A DNA stretch of 8,237 bases, taken from positions 1-8,237 of the forward strand of contig JADGIF010000454.1 of assembly GCA_018985225.1 (NCBI GenBank), read 5' to 3'. The notes under the pieces are model-generated. The model was not told the DNA's origin. It saw only the letters and a program-made list of their open reading frames with translations, and made no database searches. The stretch comes from Amoeboradix gromovi X-113. Taxonomy: Eukaryota; Fungi; Sanchytriomycota. Positions 2-8,114 of the stretch are shown in pieces. Numbering within the stretch: position 1 is the stretch's first letter; each line of letters opens with the position of its first letter. Both the position numbers and the translations under genes were made by a program.

Positions 2-2623
2 CCAATATTAAAGGAGCGAGAGGTCTCAATGGACACCTTGAGCAATGACTTTTATAAGGAGATAGATCTGTACATGGGAAAAGATATAGAAAATGAAAGC
101 TTTCACTTCGAATCGAGGCACTCTAATGATTTTTGTGATTATCATAGAATTGCTATCTACCCACCGAGCGAGGAAGTACTATCAAAGGAACCTCCAAATT
201 TACCCACTTCAGTGTCTGCATTTGATCAAAAATCAATAAGGTCTTATTTAGATTGGTTATTTCGTCTACTAAGGGAAGACGCAGTAGGGTTAATACGTGA
301 GGAAGTAAGCATTCTGGTTAGTGAAAAAACTGACAACAATGCAAAAAGAGTGCGCAATTATCTTAAGAGACAAACTTTAAATGTTACAGGATTCAGCGGC
401 TGTGGATTCGGTCAGAATGAAGCTGGCTTCAAAATGGAATTTGAAAGACCTAAAGATCTTGAAAATAAATTGAAAGGAATTGAGAAAGCAAGGCCTAAAG
501 TGACTAAGGATGTCGAGAAACAAAAAAGCGACATAACTAAAAAATACTACAAAGATAACAAGAAGTTTTTTCAAAGAGATAGTGTTGTAGCGATTATGAA
601 GGGCAAATTATTAATTAGGCTTGGGGTTGTAGTAGATAGAAAACCGATTGATGATAGTGATGAACCACATCTGGTGGTTGCATTTCTCAATAACGAAGAG
701 TTTCTAGACACATTATATGATCTAAATGAACAAGCAACATACAGCGCGGTTCAGCTCTCTGTTTCTTTCTTCTCATTCGTCTTCGTGCTAGAAAAGCTCA
801 AGTCAATATCCAAAATCCCCTTTCAAGATGAGATATTAGGAATTTCAAAGAAAATAACTGCACCTGAATATCTTGATAGCTCATTCATACGAATGCTTAG
901 CCGTTTTATACAATCAAATCCATTGAGCGACACTCGGGACTTTTTTAATCTCAGTAATTCATTGATTTTGGACAACACTCAAAAGGAAGCAATTCACAAA
1001 GCATTTGAGAATAGAGTTTCTTTAATTCAAGGACCGCCAGGTACAGGAAAATCATATTGTGGTGCATTAATTTGTAAAATGATACACGATAATTCTTTTG
1101 AACGGATTCTTTGTATTTGTTACACAAATCATGCATTGGATCAGTTTTTAGAGGATTTGATAAAATTTGGCATGCCAAAATCCCAGCTTGTTAGAATTGG
1201 TGGTGGAAAAGTTAAAGATGCATTAAAACCGTTTCAATTATGGGAGCTTGCAAAATCGAATGGCATTTCATATCGCAGATATGCAAACAGTCTTAAAAGT
1301 AAAATTAAAAGAAAGGAAAAAGAGATATCTGATTTTGAGAATATCATATTAGCGGAAAAAGATCAGAGTACTTTATTAAAAATTAGAGACAAATTGGATG
1401 TTAGTGAAGCACGAAAAGTAGAAGATGCGTTTGTTTTGCCATCTAAGTATTTAAACGTAATTGGAAGCAAGGGAAAGCCTATAAAGGGAAATTACTTGTG
1501 GTCCAGATGGTTAAATAACAAGGATCCAGGAATTGTAGGGCTGTCAGATATTAATGATAATTATGGCTTTTGGGAATTGAGTGAGGAAAAACGATTAAAA
1601 CAAAAAGATGACTGGTTAAAATCTATTTTACGCGAGAATTCCTTACATCTATCTATTTTATTTAGCGAGCTAAAACGTTTAAAGGATCAATTAAGAGAAC
1701 TAAGTTTTGAAGATGAACTTAGAGTCTTACTATCTAAAAGAGTTGTTGGGTGTACGACTAGTGGTGCAGCTAAGTATGTACAGCATATAAATGCATATAA
1801 TGCCGGTGTAGTTGTAGTTGAGGAGGCGGGTGAAATTCTGGAGTCTCACATAATCACAAGCTTAACGGAACAAAGCAAACATCTTATAATGATAGGGGAT
1901 CATAAGCAGTTAAGACCAAAAGTGAATTCATACTTTTTGAGTGTTGAATGCAGTTCTACTTACCAATTGAACAAATCTATGTTTGAACGCCTAGCTACAA
2001 GTGGATTTCCTTGTGTAACATTGGGACTTCAGCATCGAATGAGACCAGAAATATCACAGTTTGCAAAACTGACTTATCCTGATTTACAAGATGCGGTTAG
2101 CACAAGTGAGAGACCAAATTTAATAGGATGTTGCGGAAATGTTATCTTTATCCATCATGAGAATCCGGAGAACTCTGAAAAATCAGCGGAAACCATGTCT
2201 AAAACAAATACACATGAAGTTGATATGATTTCTGGCATTGTGAAATATTTATTACAGCAAGGATACAAAGCTAATCAAATGGTTGTAATAACACCATATT
2301 TAGCCCAGTTACAACTGATAAATAAAACACTATCTCATATGGTCCAAGTTTATATGAATGAAATTGATCAGGCCGACTTGCTTCGATTTGGGGTTGATCC
2401 TAATCTATTAAGCAGTAGAAAACCAAAAGAAAACCTACTGAGAGTTGCTACCATTGATAACTACCAAGGAGAAGAGTCTGATATTGTAATCGCATCCTTG
2501 ACAAGAAGTAATCCTAGCGGGGATATTGGGTTTTGTAAACAACCTGAAAGGATTAATGTTCTAACAGATACACATTTGAAAAATCCAAGTCTTGGAAGGC
2601 CATTTTCGAAATTTTGGATTTGA
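2..2623 (+). CDS. N-terminal half of a ZNFX1-like (NFX1-type zinc finger-containing) protein: Upf1/ZNFX1-family SF1 RNA helicase; probably 5'-partial and ends in a frameshift
   Basis: Frame +2 is open from the window edge (PILKEREVS precedes the ATG at 29), so the true start may lie upstream. ZNFX1-family N-terminal signatures are present: RHSNDFCDYHRIAIYP and YLDWLFRLLRED. SF1 motifs occur in order: Q motif LDNTQKEAI, Walker A GPPGTGKS (1031-1054), Ia CYTNHALDQFLE, Walker B variant VVEEAGE (EEAGE 1820-1834; EEA is typical of ZNFX1/Aquarius-type helicases), III GDHKQLRP (1895-1918), SMFERL, IV QHRMRPEI, V ATIDNYQGEE (2447-2476), and a truncated VI ERINVL. The last ~19 residues (after 2563) are out-of-frame read-through. 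Confidence 0.9.
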   Translation, partial: PILKEREVSMDTLSNDFYKEIDLYMGKDIENESFHFESRHSNDFCDYHRIAIYPPSEEVLSKEPPNLPTSVSAFDQKSIRSYLDWLFRLLREDAVGLIREEVSILVSEKTDNNAKRVRNYLKRQTLNVTGFSGCGFGQNEAGFKMEFERPKDLENKLKGIEKARPKVTKDVEKQKSDITKKYYKDNKKFFQRDSVVAIMKGKLLIRLGVVVDRKPIDDSDEPHLVVAFLNNEEFLDTLYDLNEQATYSAVQLSVSFFSFVFVLEKLKSISKIPFQDEILGISKKITAPEYLDSSFIRMLSRFIQSNPLSDTRDFFNLSNSLILDNTQKEAIHKAFENRVSLIQGPPGTGKSYCGALICKMIHDNSFERILCICYTNHALDQFLEDLIKFGMPKSQLVRIGGGKVKDALKPFQLWELAKSNGISYRRYANSLKSKIKRKEKEISDFENIILAEKDQSTLLKIRDKLDVSEARKVEDAFVLPSKYLNVIGSKGKPIKGNYLWSRWLNNKDPGIVGLSDINDNYGFWELSEEKRLKQKDDWLKSILRENSLHLSILFSELKRLKDQLRELSFEDELRVLLSKRVVGCTTSGAAKYVQHINAYNAGVVVVEEAGEILESHIITSLTEQSKHLIMIGDHKQLRPKVNSYFLSVECSSTYQLNKSMFERLATSGFPCVTLGLQHRMRPEISQFAKLTYPDLQDAVSTSERPNLIGCCGNVIFIHHENPENSEKSAETMSKTNTHEVDMISGIVKYLLQQGYKANQMVVITPYLAQLQLINKTLSHMVQVYMNEIDQADLLRFGVDPNLLSSRKPKENLLRVATIDNYQGEESDIVIASLTRSNPSGDIGFCKQPERINVLTDTHLKNPSLGRPFSKFWI

Positions 2624-5600
2624 AGCAGTTGGTGTTTCCAGGATTTCCTATAAAATGCGATAAGCATAATATAGAGCAGTTGGTAGTCTGTCCAAGTGGA
2701 TTTGAAACACAAACTCCGGGTGGTGGTTGCAGCAGCCTTTGTAATTTTAAATTACGTTGTAATCATTTATGCAAATCCACATGCCATAATCCTATTCCTA
2801 ATGATCATTCAAATGTAAAATGTATAGAAATTCGAGAATATATTTGTGATAGGCTTCATTCAGTTCCGTTACCTTGTCATAATACTGAAGACCCAAACAC
2901 ACTCTGTCTTAAATGCAAACAGTTGGAGAGGGAACAAAAGCTTGTCCTAGAAAAACTTAAGCAGGATTATGAAAATGATCTTAAGGTAGAGAAGAAGAAA
3001 GAAGAAGTAGAAAAGCTAAAATTGGAGCTACAGATGCTAAACTCTAAGGAGCAATTAGATAGAAAATTGACTCAATTAGAAAGGCAAAAGGAAGATTTGA
3101 TTAAAAAGTCCAAAAGTAAGAAAAAAGGAAAAGACAAAATGGCTAATTCACCTCCATCAAAAAGGCCTACTACGAAACTCAGATCCGTTGAAACTGAAGT
3201 CAAGAGTAAAGGTGTTGATCCTTTTTTTAAGTTATCATTGGACGATATGCTTCTTGAGGTGGAAAAAAACCCTACGTCATTAGGGGAGTGCAATGTAGTC
3301 ATGATACAATCTATAGAACCAATCCCAACCCACTTGATGAAAGGGATTAATTTAAGTCAAGATTCGTGGATGGATGCACTCAAAATATTTTCTAAATTAG
3401 AAGAGACAGACGAAAACAAGAAACTCTTGTGTAAAATATGCACTGTACTTTTAGGAGCACAAGCAGAGAATTTAGATGCTATAAATGGACACGCAGTATT
3501 GCTTTGTTTCTTGAAATGTATGGCTGAATCGGACCCTAAACAAAGTATTGGACATGGTTTATTATATTTGCTCTGTAGCAAATCTCTAAAACTACCAATT
3601 AAATGGAAGCACGTAATACAAGAGAAAATCGAGAATCACTTGATATCTTTTAGCAAGTCTGATGAGCCAGAAGCCCTTGATAAGGTAATATTCGCAAAAT
3701 GGGAAATGGAGAAGGAAATTAAGGGTGTCTATAATGAAGGCATGGATAATTTGTTTGAGTTGAGTGGCCTGGGTTCCATAAAAGAACAGTTTTTCCACAT
3801 TTATCAACTTTTTACGAGTTTCAAAGAACGTGGCATGGATATTCAGGGAAAGCGCTTAAATATATTATTAATGGGTAATCCTGGAACTGGAAAAACTACA
3901 GTTGCTAAATTTTACGCCCAGTTTCTTGCGGATTTGGGTATTTTGAGTGGAACAGCGTTTGTGGATATCACTGGTGCAAAGCTGGTTCAGAATGGGGTTA
4001 AAGAGTTGCAAAAGCACTTGGATAGCATTGAAGAACAAAATGGCGGAATGCTTTTTATTGATGAGGCATACCAACTAGATCCCTCAAAAGAATCAAATGG
4101 AAGACACTGTGTGGATTTGCTATTAACTGAAATCGAGAGTAAAACAGGTAGATTAGTAGTAGCGTTTGCAGGCTATGAAAAAAATATTCAAGAGTTAATG
4201 ACTTACAATGATGGCTTGCATAGCCGATTTCCCTATCAATTCGTTTTAGAAGATTACTCGGATGAGATGCTACATGATATCTTAATTTCTCTTATTCGGA
4301 AACTCAATTTCACTGTGGAAGACGGTTTTTATGGTATTCCTATCAAGGCATTTGTGAAAAGGATTGCTTCAATGCGCGGGAAAAAAGGGTTTGGAAATGC
4401 TCGTCAAGTGCAGAACAGCTTGGACAAAGTGATGGAGAGGCAAGCTATGAGATTGAAGGAGGAAAACAATGAGAACAAATTTGAGCTGTTGTTATCAGAT
4501 CTTCTCGGTCCAAATCCAATTGATGTCATCAAGTCTTGTAAACCATGGCTTGATCTAAAAAAAATGATTGGTTTATCCAAAGTTAAAGAATCAGTAGAAG
4601 CATTGTTAACGTTATCAAAAAGGAATTATGAGTTGGAAATTCAGTTAAAGCCTATCAATTACCCAATTTTGAATAAAATATTTATTGGAAATCCAGGTAC
4701 CGGGAAAACAACTGTCGCAAAACTATACGGGCATATTCTTAAAGAGTTGGGATTTCTGAGTGATGGTGAGGTCGTTATCAAGAATCCTAGTGATTTTGTT
4801 GGTTCAGTTCTAGGTGAGTCTGAAAAGAATACGCTTCAAATTTTGAAGTCTACTGTTGGCAAAGTTCTAATTATTGACGAAGCTTATGGCCTATACTCAA
4901 CCGCAAATATTTATGGCAAGGCAGTGATTGATACAATAGTTGCTGAAGTGCAGAACACACCTGGTGATGACAGGTGTGTACTTTTGTTGGGTTACAGTGA
5001 TAAAATGAGGGAGCTATTAGATAAAAGTAACGAAGGGTTGTCTCGTAGATTCGATGCAAATCAACCATTCGAGTTTACGGATTATTCAAAGGACGAGCTA
5101 ATGAAAATCTTTAATTTAAAAATGTCTCGTTTGGAACAAACCTGCTCGCAGGAGTCACTATTTGCCGCAATAGATGTGCTAGAGAGGGAGAAAATGAAGC
5201 AGAACTTTGGAAATGGAGGCTCAGTTGATAATATAATCAGAAATGCTATAAGCAGAATGAACGGAAGAAAAGGTAGCGAGTTGCTTCCAGAGGACTTTGA
5301 CCCCAACTACAATACTCCGCCGATAAATGTAGATGATTTGTTTGCAGATATGCTAGACTGCAGTGATTTGAAATCAAGAATGAAGGCTTGGCAGAATAAA
5401 TTAGAAAAAACTGGATTAATGGGAACAGATCCCGAACTGCCAATGTGCATTAAATTTTTAGGGCCCCCTGGGACTGGAAAAACTACATCGGCAAGAATTA
5501 TGGGGAAATACTATCGTTCTTTAGGGATTTTGGCTGATGATACTGTTGTGGAAGCTTCGGCTTCAGATCTAATCGGTCAATTTGTTGGTCAAACTTCTTT

Positions 5601-6780
5601 AAAAACAAAGGCAAAGTTCGAAGAGGCACTTGGAAAAGTGCTATTCATTGATGAGGCGTACAGGTTGTCCCCAGGTAATAATACTGGCGGGTATGCGAAA
5701 GAAGCACTAGATGAAATAGTAGACTTAATAACTAAGCCAAAATTCCACCGCAAGATTATTATAATTTTAGCAGGCTATGAGAGAGACATAAAGCATTTGA
5801 TGAATGCGAACCCTGGATTAGCTAGTCGATTCTCGGAATCTGTAAGCTTCCATAACTTCTCAAGTGCGCAGTGTTTGGATTTATTGTGCGGTTTGCTGGC
5901 TGCGAAAAATTTTAAATTGAGCAGAGACGAAGAATTGCTAACCTTGTTTGACAAACTGATATCAAAGCCAAATTGGGGTAACGGTAGGGATATAGGCGCT
6001 ATCAAGGAACAGCTAATTAGTGAGGGCCTTAAACTAATTACCGCAGAATCAATAAATTCAAATAGCACATTTACGTTGCCATTGGACCTTGTAAGGAGAT
6101 GTTTAACTGAGCTCATTGAACTTAGGGAAACTTCATCAGCGGTAGACGAGAAGCCTGTCCTGCCAATGGAAAATTTATCGTTACAGCTACGCGAAGCACA
6201 AGACACACACCCCAAAGTGAAAGTTGACCATTCTAATAAAGCCATTGATCCACATGAAGTACTTGATAATGAAACAAAAGACCAAAGAGATGCAGGTGTT
6301 ACTGATGCAGTTTGGCAACAGTTGCAATTAGACATTAATGAACGTGAAAAGGAGGATAAATACTGCGAAAAACTGATTAACCAAGCAAATGAGGAAAAGA
6401 ATCGGCTTCAAAAAACAAAGGAAGAGCTAGAAAGATTGAAATTGTTGATCCTAGAGCAATCAATACTGATTGAAGATAACAAAGAGAGTGACGAGGACGA
6501 AAAGAGACGTAAAAGACAGAAAATTGAAGAGCAAAGGCAACTGCAAGAGCAAGAAAGATTAATGAAATTACTAGTAGATGAAAATGAAAGGAGGGAACAG
6601 GCTGCTGCTTTGAAAGCTAGGCGAGCTGAAGAAAGACGAGAAATAGAGGTTCGAGCTCAAGAAAAGATCCGGGAATTAGGTGTTTGCCCTGCTAATTTCG
6701 TATGGATTAAACAGAGTGGTGGATATAGATGTGCCGGTGGTAGTCATTTCATTCACAATGCACAGCTTGGCGTTCAATAA
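2557..6780 (+). CDS. C-terminal half of the same gene: end of helicase, NF-X1-type zinc fingers, coiled coil, three tandem CbbX/SpoVK-type AAA+ ATPase domains, C-terminal Cys/His motif
   Basis: Frame +1 is open from 2557 (after TAA 2554-2556). It reads NRYTFEKSKSWKAIFEILDLKQLVFPGFPIKCDKH, the typical post-motif-VI helicase tail, so the TTG 'start' at 2614 is not a real start. There are three Walker A/B pairs: GNPGTGKT 3874-3897 with FIDEAY 4054-4071; GNPGTGKT 4687-4710 with IIDEAY 4870-4887; GPPGTGKT 5461-5484 with FIDEAY 5644-5661. Each is followed by CbbX-type (A/L)GY, GLxxRF and (F/W)GN motifs. The frame ends with TAA at 6778-6780. Confidence 0.92.
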   Translation, partial: CSNRYTFEKSKSWKAIFEILDLKQLVFPGFPIKCDKHNIEQLVVCPSGFETQTPGGGCSSLCNFKLRCNHLCKSTCHNPIPNDHSNVKCIEIREYICDRLHSVPLPCHNTEDPNTLCLKCKQLEREQKLVLEKLKQDYENDLKVEKKKEEVEKLKLELQMLNSKEQLDRKLTQLERQKEDLIKKSKSKKKGKDKMANSPPSKRPTTKLRSVETEVKSKGVDPFFKLSLDDMLLEVEKNPTSLGECNVVMIQSIEPIPTHLMKGINLSQDSWMDALKIFSKLEETDENKKLLCKICTVLLGAQAENLDAINGHAVLLCFLKCMAESDPKQSIGHGLLYLLCSKSLKLPIKWKHVIQEKIENHLISFSKSDEPEALDKVIFAKWEMEKEIKGVYNEGMDNLFELSGLGSIKEQFFHIYQLFTSFKERGMDIQGKRLNILLMGNPGTGKTTVAKFYAQFLADLGILSGTAFVDITGAKLVQNGVKELQKHLDSIEEQNGGMLFIDEAYQLDPSKESNGRHCVDLLLTEIESKTGRLVVAFAGYEKNIQELMTYNDGLHSRFPYQFVLEDYSDEMLHDILISLIRKLNFTVEDGFYGIPIKAFVKRIASMRGKKGFGNARQVQNSLDKVMERQAMRLKEENNENKFELLLSDLLGPNPIDVIKSCKPWLDLKKMIGLSKVKESVEALLTLSKRNYELEIQLKPINYPILNKIFIGNPGTGKTTVAKLYGHILKELGFLSDGEVVIKNPSDFVGSVLGESEKNTLQILKSTVGKVLIIDEAYGLYSTANIYGKAVIDTIVAEVQNTPGDDRCVLLLGYSDKMRELLDKSNEGLSRRFDANQPFEFTDYSKDELMKIFNLKMSRLEQTCSQESLFAAIDVLEREKMKQNFGNGGSVDNIIRNAISRMNGRKGSELLPEDFDPNYNTPPINVDDLFADMLDCSDLKSRMKAWQNKLEKTGLMGTDPELPMCIKFLGPPGTGKTTSARIMGKYYRSLGILADDTVVEASASDLIGQFVGQTSLKTKAKFEEALGKVLFIDEAYRLSPGNNTGGYAKEALDEIVDLITKPKFHRKIIIILAGYERDIKHLMNANPGLASRFSESVSFHNFSSAQCLDLLCGLLAAKNFKLSRDEELLTLFDKLISKPNWGNGRDIGAIKEQLISEGLKLITAESINSNSTFTLPLDLVRRCLTELIELRETSSAVDEKPVLPMENLSLQLREAQDTHPKVKVDHSNKAIDPHEVLDNETKDQRDAGVTDAVWQQLQLDINEREKEDKYCEKLINQANEEKNRLQKTKEELERLKLLILEQSILIEDNKESDEDEKRRKRQKIEEQRQLQEQERLMKLLVDENERREQAAALKARRAEERREIEVRAQEKIRELGVCPANFVWIKQSGGYRCAGGSHFIHNAQLGVQ
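2656..2916 (+). other. NF-X1-type Cys/His-rich zinc-finger region
   Basis: CDKH...GGCSSLCNFKLRCNHLCKSTCH...DHSNVKC...CDRLH...LPCH...CLKC. The L-x-C-x-H-x-C-xxx-CH pattern is the NF-X1-type repeat that follows the helicase in ZNFX1-family proteins. Confidence 0.8.
3730..6130 (+). repeat. Three tandem protein-level repeats of a CbbX-like AAA+ module (~3730-4500, ~4540-5310, ~5330-6130)
   Basis: Walker A motifs are spaced 813 and 774 nt apart, with the same motif order in each unit. Similarity is clear at the protein level but not as a near-identical DNA repeat, indicating an old triplication. Boundaries are approximate. Confidence 0.85.
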
Positions 6781-6796
6781 AACTTGATAAATTAAA
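6776..6796 (+). terminator. Putative polyadenylation signals: AATAAA overlapping the stop codon (6776-6781) and ATTAAA (6791-6796)
   Basis: The sequence caaTAAaacttgataaattaaa lies at the gene end, at the start of a 142-nt AT-rich intergenic spacer. The AT-rich context makes chance matches likely. Confidence 0.35.
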
Positions 6797-6922
6797 TAAT
6801 TAAATATTTCAAAGTCGCAAAAAGTTGTGGTAGATGTTCAGCTTTTTTAAATACCATAGTAGAATTGTTAGATAACTATTTTTATTAATTTTTGATGGAC
6901 GTTACAATTCTAAAACCTTAAA

Positions 6923-7530
6923 ATGCTTCCCTATTTCCTTCTTTATTTTGCTCTAACAATCGAAGAGTCATTCCCAGAGATAAAAGGAGAATGGTGTATT
7001 ACAACTAACAAAGGATAATTTTGATATATTGGCCGAATTCAAATCACCTGTTATAGTGAAATTTTATACGCAGTGGTGTCGCTCTTGTAAAAAGCACAAA
7101 AGTGCATATGAATCTGCTGCTAAACTTCTATGGAAGAATGCTAACTTGCCATTATTTCAAGCTGATTGTGGTGAACTAAGTGATATCTGTGAAAAGGTTA
7201 GTCAATGAAATGCCATCTTTCAAAGTATATCATAACGGCGCTCTTAAATCAGAATACAAAGGATCGAGAAGAACTGAGGACATTGTAGATTTTATTGCAC
7301 GACATAAAATCCCATCAATTCAATCCATCGGGCCGTCAACACCCGAAACCAGGTATTATTTCACCTTGGCTACAAACTATAACAAATTGCTAGAAAAAAC
7401 AGAATATAAGCCGTTGCTGAAATATTTAAAAGGTATAGAAGTAGTATTTTTAACAGTAACTGAAGAAAAAGAATTTGTAGAAAACATTTCATTTGAATTT
7501 CGATTGTTGGCAAAGCAGTTCTATTACTAT
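6923..7530 (+). pseudogene. Protein disulfide isomerase/thioredoxin-domain family gene, frameshifted and 3'-truncated (pseudogene or sequence errors)
   Basis: Frame +2 from ATG 6923 gives a signal-peptide-like MLPYFLLYFALTIEESFPEIK (stop at 7016-7018). Frame +3 (6984-7208, missed by the ORF track) gives ENGVLQLTKDNFDILAEFKSPVIVKFYTQWCRSCKKHKSAYESAAKLL...FQADCGELSDICEK, with WCRSC at 7074-7088. Frame +1 continues VNEMPSFKVYHNGALKSEYKGSRRTEDIVDFIARHKIPSI, containing the cis-Pro loop and the Y-x-G-x-R motif of PDI a-domains. A b-domain-like stretch follows (LLKYLKGIEVVFLTV...FRLLAKQF). Confidence 0.85.
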
Positions 7531-8114
7531 TTATTTAACCTATCTCTATCCAACTTGCATTTCAATGATGAAATGGAAAAGAGATAAGTATATCTTACAA
7601 GATTAGTTGGCCAGGGTCTCTATTTAACATCGTTTGCAAATCTTGGAAATTATTTACGGGAAAATGGCTTGTTAGATTCAGCTACGACTCTTAATTTATC
7701 TGATAATTATGTTTAAGTAGAAACTCTGAGTCCTATTTTGGAAGCTGTTGAAAAATGTTCGCAGCTAAAGTATTGGATTTAACTTCAAGTGTGAATAATA
7801 CTAACAAAATCTCTTTTTCGTTTGACCCTAACTGCAGAAATGATTTAGGCATACTTACTCTCTTTAAGATTCTTGAAAATATAAAATATCTTGATATTCG
7901 TGGTAATCGCATTCATTCGAGCTTTTTAAAGGCGTTATTTGAGAAAAAGCATAAATGTTTAACAACGGAAATCAATGAAGACATTTGATACTTGGAAAGA
8001 GTTATTTGGATCCCGCAGAAATATATTGGAAAAGCCAATCAATTGCAGTACTCCAATCATGGTAATGTGTTAACAGTGATTGCTCACGCTTTCACTACCC
8101 TGAGGCGGGATTGA
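7531..8114 (+). pseudogene. Degenerate leucine-rich repeat (RNI-like LRR) protein coding sequence
   Basis: Frame +1 reads ...EKR*VYLTRLVGQGLYLTSFANLGNYLRENGLLDSATTLNLSDNYV*VETLSPILEAVEKCSQL. After a 1-nt loss in ctaaagta (7765-7772), frame +3 reads KVLDLTSSVNNTNKI...ILENIKYLDIRGNRIHSSFLKALF...EDI*YLERVIWIPQKYI... LxLxxN-type repeats are TTLNLSDNYV, LKVLDLT and IKYLDIRGNRI. In-frame stops lie at 7585-7587, 7714-7716 and 7986-7988. Both boundaries are approximate. Confidence 0.7.

Follow-up and report, generated by a model that had tools for sequence, protein, structure and literature searches.

The 8,237-nucleotide (nt) contig JADGIF010000454.1 of the sanchytrid fungus Amoeboradix gromovi X-113, analyzed here over its entire length and called the window, carries on its + strand a gene for a very large protein in which a helicase half resembling ZNFX1 is followed by three AAA+ ATPase modules. 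Judged from sequence comparison, this gene appears to be the A. gromovi member of a widely conserved, uncharacterised fungal family of proteins of ~2300 amino acids (aa). The best explanation overall, to which we assign a probability of roughly 0.6, is that a conserved ZNFX1-like half and a triple AAA+ half work together in this family in RNA-coupled protein remodelling. Genome-wide comparisons were made with the 10.5-Mb, 1319-contig assembly of A. gromovi.

The coding sequence lies in two long open reading frames (ORFs) on the + strand, ORF1 at 2-2623 (frame 2, with an ATG at 29) and ORF2 at 2614-6780 (frame 1), which were searched as separate pieces without reading through the stop. In an alignment with 12 homologues, both ORFs are colinear with the full-length proteins, which a wrong family assignment would not have shown. 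We infer that they belong to one gene, joined across a frame change at 2563. The reconstructed protein has 854 aa up to the junction and 1405 aa beyond it, 2259 aa in all, and 12 residues are absent at the junction. A preliminary description of this DNA, made from the sequence alone, had proposed one protein with a superfamily 1 (SF1) helicase, NF-X1 fingers, two coiled coils, three AAA+ modules and a Cys/His tail; each of the named elements is present on the + strand. From N- to C-terminus, a ZNFX1-like region is followed by the SF1 helicase and a Cys-rich stretch of ZNFX1 type; a charged helical segment then leads to the three AAA+ modules, behind which come a long helix and a small Cys/His domain. 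The parts lie as follows.

2..967, + strand: N-terminal region with the ZNFX1-type pre-helicase motif (RH-ND...IYP...FRLLRED), from alignment to human ZNFX1 419-486 and 568-815
968..2560, + strand: SF1 (Upf1-like) helicase core, up to ...ERINVL, from Pfam AAA_11 and AAA_12 and from PDB ZNFX1 9q9z
2561..2623, + strand: junction or lesion, from alignment with 12 homologues and from Logan contigs
2635..2922, + strand: Cys/His-rich finger region of ZNFX1/NF-X1 type, from alignment to human ZNFX1 1326-1428
2923..3183, + strand: first K/E/Q-rich helical segment, a presumed coiled coil, from composition and a charged counterpart in 12 of 12 homologues
3184..3738, + strand: middle region of no known family, with no Pfam match
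3739..4533, + strand: AAA+ module 1, from NCBIfam models and motifs
4549..5328, + strand: AAA+ module 2, from NCBIfam models, PDB CbbX and motifs
5329..6108, + strand: AAA+ module 3, from NCBIfam models, PDB EccA1 and motifs
6286..6678, + strand: C-terminal stalk, an RDxGV[ST]DxxWxQL motif (6286-6324) and then a helix of ~125 residues, from motif conservation and AlphaFold2
6679..6780, + strand: C-terminal mini-domain, GVCPANFVWIKQSGGYRCAGGSHFIHNAQLGVQ, followed by the stop codon, from invariant residues and AlphaFold2

Pfam was silent on the N-terminus, the finger region, the middle region and the tail, even at E<=10. When compared by eye, the middle region resembles only sanchytrid, chytrid and metagenomic relatives (P0002, P0094, P0004). 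The frame of ORF1 is open back to base 2, so that the gene is 5'-truncated by the end of the contig, and the true start is either missing or the ATG at 29. Because of this open frame, and because the RH-ND motif lies at aa 39 in the window copy and at aa 198 in the Aspergillus nidulans protein, the N-terminus is taken to be incomplete.

The union of helicase and AAA+ array is a property of the whole family. A word-indexed search with ORF2 gave 734 matches, and the best 120 (119 non-self) were listed. AAA_12 and AAA occur together in one polypeptide in all 119 non-self matches listed, as the preliminary description had expected, and most of these proteins have 2200-2400 aa. The matches listed come from many Ascomycota and Basidiomycota, from the chytrid Blyttiomyces and from Sanchytrium tribonematis, the closest among the matches listed (44% identity), and most species occur once among the 120 best matches. 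Identity between sanchytrid and Dikarya proteins is ~40% over >1000 aa, and 98 of 115 long homologues have kept every one of the four ATPase sites. At least 2-3 copies on one contig are found in a few Agaricomycetes, namely Armillaria fumosa, A. nabsnona, A. novae-zelandiae, Lanmaoa asiatica and Tetrapyrgos nigripes. One member is A. nidulans AN7246 (P0095, 2310 aa), whose domains, from RH-ND through to the very C-terminus, come in the order of the window protein, including RDxGVSDxxW and the C-terminal domain; the window copy differs from it in having an extra middle region, a missing N-terminus and a break at helicase motif VI, at ~40% identity. The order of the AN7246-like family (helicase, fingers, helical segment, three AAA+ modules, RDxGVSDxxW, long helix and a C-W-C-H tail) is found in the window and is broken only at 2563.

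As assembled, the two ORFs could be read as two separate genes, one for the helicase and one for the AAA+ array, and the predicted protein P0001 (1248 aa, ORF2 only) begins inside ORF2. Such a division in A. gromovi is extremely improbable, and the colinear alignment speaks against it. ORF1 ends in 19 unrelated codons after the loss of motif VI, ORF2 opens midway through the GN-x-TF...W stretch, which is conserved and in each homologue comes straight after motif VI, and the homologues among the matches listed are all single polypeptides.

A separate observation concerns the gene model from the sister species S. tribonematis (P0002, predicted 1726 aa). Motif VI is intact in this protein. Its start lies beyond the Walker A region, and at its other end the family sequence gives way to unrelated residues once ERDPGIS is reached, where RDxGVSDxxW should go on. 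The model looks interrupted at both ends, by introns, frameshifts or assembly.

The helicase half is closest to ZNFX1. ORF1 matches Pfam AAA_11 at aa 323-643 (E 3.9e-31) and AAA_12 at aa 656-853 (E 3.2e-34), the latter over profile positions 1-179 of 195 only; the Walker A motif GPPGTGKS begins at 1031, and motif II is VVVVEEAG. Among solved structures, human ZNFX1 (9q9z) is the nearest with an E of 8.3e-71, as against ~1e-25 for Upf1/Nam7, and the match takes in the pre-helicase region (human 419-486, 568-815) as well as the helicase core. The Cys-rich stretch after the helicase is colinear with human ZNFX1 1326-1428 (E 1.3e-7), and the Cys and His residues of its pattern, P-GGC...C...L-C-x-H-x-C-x3-CH...H...C...C...H...C...C-x2-C, are kept in 12 homologues. 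The earlier view of the helicase as ZNFX1-like is thereby borne out, with both the pre-helicase region and the post-helicase fingers matching. The label of NF-X1 fingers stands as far as the colinear alignment goes, while Pfam zf-NF-X1 gave no match in the finger region at E<=10.

According to recent work, ZNFX1 is a helicase and E3 ligase that is activated by RNA and serves antiviral immunity in humans, and it owes its E3 activity to the Z-RING and the RZ finger (bioRxiv 2025.09.05.674436). What the window gene shares with animal ZNFX1, colinear with human ~419-1428, is the pre-helicase region, followed by an SF1 helicase of Upf1 type and a Cys-rich region of NF-X1 type. In contrast to it, the window gene has no detectable RZ finger, and it carries three AAA+ modules and a different C-terminal domain instead. 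No Z-RING was found either: the match stops at human 1428, where a charged helical segment follows, and the Z-RING, which binds E2, is human 1462-1652, whereas the PDB chain has only 1451 residues and may exclude it.

Hrr1 and SAD-3 are fungal relatives of ZNFX1. A. gromovi has, on another contig (C674, 182-5842, + strand), a separate and intact ZNFX1 orthologue of 1886 aa. Here zf-CCCH lies at the N-terminus, AAA_11 and an AAA_12 matched in full come next, and ZnF_RZ (2.1e-20; FYECPNGHLYTIGECG...CPTCGATIGGAHH) is at the C-terminus. The orthologue is 28% identical to the window helicase half, and its alignment to the window N-terminal region begins at aa 351. Since the same genome holds its own RZ-bearing orthologue, the window gene is, by sequence relationship, classed as a ZNFX1 paralogue and not as an orthologue.

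In Pfam, ORF2 contains three PF00004 AAA stretches and two AAA_lid_6 stretches, and Walker A (G[NP]PGTGKT) and Walker B (hhIDEAY) each occur in it three times. In module 1, Walker A begins at 3874 and is followed by Walker B LFIDEAY, GY, NDGLHSRF and sensor-2 GNAR (NCBIfam SpoVK 7.6e-44, CbbX 3.8e-31, EccA 8.9e-31). In module 2, Walker A begins at 4687, with Walker B LIIDEAY, GY and NEGLSRRF, and the sensor-2 Arg is absent (GNGG); NCBIfam gives SpoVK 3.7e-42 and CbbX 2e-38, and the CbbX structures 3zuh and 3syl match at ~5e-29. Module 3 has its Walker A from 5461, then LFIDEAY, GY, NPGLASRF and sensor-2 GNGR (SpoVK 3e-44, EccA 2.1e-38; EccA1 structure 9lur 2.5e-28). CbbX and EccA1 are the sole PDB matches of the AAA+ half, and the NCBIfam models of SpoVK, CbbX and EccA are matched over their full length by every module, with E-values from 1e-31 to 1e-44. 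The module scores are 107-151 bits and the equivalog cut-offs are 423-467 bits. As the scores reach only about a third of the cut-offs, the three modules are not equivalogs, and they are orthologous to none of SpoVK, CbbX and EccA.

Membership in the wider clade is supported by residues as well. The SpoVK-EccA-like clade's signatures are a GY in sensor 1, an Asn upstream of the Arg finger and a sensor-2 Arg (PMC11513918). In the window, AGY, LGY and AGY together with N-x-GL-x-x-R-F are found in 3 of 3 modules, and the sensor-2 Arg in modules 1 and 3 only. The CbbX-type identity given in the preliminary description agrees with the SpoVK, CbbX and EccA models and with the CbbX and EccA1 structures. 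The window modules are like the clade in their end-to-end model matches, AAA_lid_6, GY and N-x-GL-x-x-R-F, and they differ in that one chain holds three tandem modules, where the clade has one, and in their fusion to an RNA helicase, where the clade has tetratricopeptide repeats (TPRs), a beta-helix or short N-domains. A fusion of this kind is already on record: an SF-1 RNA helicase is among the N-terminal domains of eukaryotic clade members, for which a role in RNA processing has independently been predicted (PMC11513918, 2024). The architecture is therefore not undescribed. The proposed analogy to RNF213 is not supported. Both proteins are giants in which multiple AAA+ modules are combined with a C-terminal element rich in Cys and His, but the likeness ends with this general design. 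RNF213 is built from six modules of dynein-like type together with a RING, an E3 shell and an RZ finger, whereas the window protein has three classical SpoVK/CbbX-type modules, no RING/E3 module and a tail without RZ similarity, no RING or RZ family being found by Pfam.

Behind the AAA+ modules, the RDxGV[ST]DxxW motif occurs in 111 of 120 homologues, ~130-160 aa from the C-terminus, with R, D, D and W invariant. AlphaFold2 predicts one helix (19-143, mean pLDDT 93.4) plus a small beta tip in this C-terminal part. Of the two coiled coils proposed earlier, the second thus corresponds to one long predicted helix (pLDDT 93), and the first is presumed from K/E/Q-rich composition and the homologue alignment. 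The tail, the last ~35 residues, is the most conserved part of the family. Its consensus is MGVCPxGFxWIKQxGGYRCAGGSHFVSNxQLG, in which C, W, G, C, G and H are invariant in 31 sequences. The Cys/His tail of the preliminary description is real, and identity to the window tail is 46-69% across the fungi sampled. For the tail alone, AlphaFold2 gives three short strands and a helix (pLDDT 90). VIA-align of the 37-aa tail model found the zinc ribbons of Rpb9, TFIIB and NADH pyrophosphatase, and Rieske knuckles, at a best Z of 2.0-2.5, which is suggestive only. The tail has no Pfam family (E<=10) and no PDB sequence match in a profile search, Foldseek of the 176-aa C-terminal model against PDB returned nothing below E 2.8, and no usable match came from searching the ESM Atlas by features for the 60-aa tail. 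The tail was also considered as an RZ finger, and this was rejected at the sequence level: ZnF_RZ is found neither on the window tail (Pfam, E<=10) nor on 31 homologous tails, the tail profile finds no RNF213 or ZNFX1 chain in PDB, and a profile search with filters off gives no match in the RZ-bearing ZNFX1 of A. gromovi.

A profile search with the tail over 1.84 billion cluster representatives (E<=0.001) gave 1404 proteins, and 151 were inspected. In 82 of these, upstream family sequence is matched as well, which makes them family members or fragments. Tail bearers of ~410-450 aa were considered as a second architecture; the scanned members start inside an AAA module, and the class is taken to consist of C-terminal pieces of family proteins. 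The mini-domain, with the pattern C-x2-G-[FY]-x-W-x5-7-G-[YWF]-x-C-x-GG-x-H, also occurs in tandem arrays in other proteins, of which several are fungal:

P0122: 16 mini-domain copies, no context identified
P0123: 8 copies, no context identified
P0275: 2 copies with a NACHT-type nucleoside triphosphatase (NTPase; NPHP3_N, 1e-21)
P0271: 4 copies with TPRs of NOD-like receptor (NLR) type
P0135: 3 copies with a kinase fragment
P0129 (Pleurotus): 3-4 copies with a ubiquitin-like domain
P0128 (Cudoniella): 3 copies, no context identified
P0131 (lichen fungus): 3 copies, no context identified

Because other proteins carry tandem copies in different contexts, the tail is classed as an independent mobile domain.

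The break at 2563 deserves separate treatment. Frame 2 follows the 12 homologues up to ...GFCKQPERINVL, ending in ...NVL (cta, 2561-2563), and frame 1 picks up at NRYTFEKSKSWKAIF... (GN-x-TF...W in others), continuing with NRYTF from 2563; past the junction, frame 2 runs through 19 unrelated codons to a stop at 2621-2623. Compared with the 12 homologues, exactly 12 residues are absent, LSRA[RK]xxxIxIG, which correspond to helicase motif VI. This motif holds the arginine finger. Base 2563 serves both as the last base of the Leu codon and as the first of the Asn codon, and the loss therefore amounts to 37 nt. An intron as the cause was rejected, since sequence is missing here, not extra. A second copy or allele of the junction was not found in the A. 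gromovi assembly.

Sequence of this contig is present in a single public run. Its Logan contigs total 50.7 Mb, close to the 48.7 Mb of the raw assembly (PMC8371127), so that this run is probably the source library of the assembly. The Logan contigs cover 1639-2566 and 2585-7400 with zero differences at a local depth of 5-8, both stopping cleanly at the gap, and no contig spans 2567-2584. Every 31-mer touching these 18 bases is missing from the independently built contigs, though the bases encode the family-homologous RYTFEK. For the genome (10.5 Mb), the DNA of a sporangium was amplified by REPLI-g multiple displacement amplification (MDA), sequenced as HiSeq 2x100 reads and assembled with SPAdes in single-cell mode (PMC8371127).

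Two accounts of the break have to be weighed. Downstream of the gene, the contig has two further stretches with coding similarity.

6914-7584, + strand: thioredoxin/protein disulfide isomerase (PDI)-like relic, thioredoxin fold (E 8e-11) with the active site WCRSC
7588-7985, + strand: leucine-rich repeat (LRR)-like sequence (LNLSDNY..., ...KVLDLTSS...ILENIKYLDIRGNRI...), Pfam LRR_1 weak (E 0.12)

The relic has a signal-peptide-like start (MLPYFLLYFALT) in frame 1, profile positions 2-68 in frame 2 and positions 69-102 in frame 0, and its two frameshifts sit at A-runs (near 6985-7000 and 7190-7200), in agreement with an independent Logan contig. The LRR-like sequence is split by a frameshift at the A-run in cagctaaagtattgg, again reproduced in the Logan contig, and looks like another decayed gene. 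Introns as the cause of these shifts were rejected, as conserved residues immediately flank each of them. Since the independent contig reproduces all three A-run frameshifts, real decay does occur on this contig.

The A. gromovi copy may be a true recent pseudogene that lost motif VI and its reading frame through a genuine deletion of 37 nt in the course of sanchytrid reductive evolution. The loss is precise and out of frame, the left Logan contig extends 3 nt beyond the junction (to 2566), which means that at least two reads carry the junction itself, the thioredoxin/PDI-like and LRR-like neighbours are broken, and the Sanchytrium orthologue as predicted (P0002) also lacks both ends. These points make a real deletion a serious possibility, if the less probable of the two. 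The 6.7 kb of AT-rich coding sequence contain no further stop or frameshift, as against three in the 1.3 kb downstream, so that an inactivation would have to be very recent; the lack of A-run shifts here suggests that the gene is, or was until very recently, under selection. Moreover, a genuine deletion should be covered like its flanks, and 2567-2584 are in no contig of the public run. MDA is known to yield chimeric junctions and coverage gaps, and a thin or chimeric MDA bridge fits this picture better. On balance, an artefact of an MDA-based, locally thin assembly is somewhat more likely than real recent inactivation, and the break should not be taken as biology pending confirmation from raw reads.

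How such a protein may work can be outlined from its architecture. The helicase would bind single-stranded RNA and move along it, and would in this way place the protein on RNA or on a ribonucleoprotein (RNP). The helical segments may bring two chains together, whose 2 x 3 AAA+ modules could then form the closed ring of six that ATPases of this class require. This ring would be a narrow-substrate protein remodeller like CbbX, SpoVK and EccA, with one or a few specific proteins on the RNA as its target, and the C-terminal mini-domain at the tip of the stalk may be a docking module for a conserved partner. Several points weigh against this reading. The 2 x 3 ring, the dimerisation by helices and the docking at the tip are drawn from architecture, and the AlphaFold2 model is monomeric. 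Module 2 without its sensor-2 Arg suggests that the three modules may be non-equivalent. A metal-binding, zinc-ribbon-like nature of the tail is plausible from its predicted model, but the tail has only three invariant candidate metal ligands. Should the loss of 37 nt be real, neither a functional helicase nor a fused protein could come from this copy, and the decayed neighbour genes on the contig raise the odds of real decay. The only public run with the contig sequence is DNA. In the literature, no functional study of the family was found, PMC11513918 mentioning the fusion only in passing, and relatives carry generic names only, both as the preliminary description had stated.

The same architecture has been read as a fungal machine of innate immunity or RNA surveillance, in which the helicase would sense viral, transposon or aberrant RNA, the AAA+ array would be the motor, and the C-terminal tip would act as effector or in signalling. 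The paralogy to ZNFX1, itself an antiviral RNA helicase and E3 ligase, speaks for such a role. Tandem family members on single contigs in three Armillaria species, Lanmaoa and Tetrapyrgos give it weak support, as does the tail domain, whose tandem copies follow a NACHT-type NTPase in P0275, TPRs of NLR type in P0271, a kinase fragment in P0135 and a ubiquitin-like domain in P0129. Contexts of these four kinds are typical of fungal non-self recognition proteins. However, only a few NLR-like carriers of the mini-domain are seen, for the most part as metagenomic fragments. Conservation is strong and uniform (~40% between sanchytrid and Dikarya proteins, 46-69% in the tail), ATPase sites are hardly ever lost, the majority of species have a single entry in the 120 best matches, no RZ or E3 module was found, and no paper was found that links the family to viruses or RNA interference. 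An immune role is possible, and the points for and against it are both indecisive, but as an account of the family we consider it unlikely. Somewhat less probable again is its most specific form, a kingdom-wide fungal RNA-triggered defence or surveillance in which foreign or aberrant RNPs would receive a dimeric 2 x 3 AAA+ ring through the action of the sensor helicase, and the C-W-C-H mini-domain, as a metal-binding element, would be the docking or signalling link to NLR-like non-self recognition. RNA-coupled protein remodelling is the better-supported mechanism.

The architecture as such is already known, since databases contain it under generic names and one paper refers to it (PMC11513918). 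What is added here is the distinction of paralogue and orthologue within one genome, the warning on the break at 2563, and the definition of the mini-domain with its other architectures. Fungi keep, besides a ZNFX1 orthologue, an equally large paralogue in which a triple AAA+ motor appears to stand in place of the ligase part. As the family is widespread and its ATPase sites are conserved, it is a well-defined target in tractable fungi, such as A. nidulans (AN7246) and Botrytis. The C-terminal mini-domain, which is absent from Pfam, could be annotated as a new domain and may provide a handle for finding the partner of the family.

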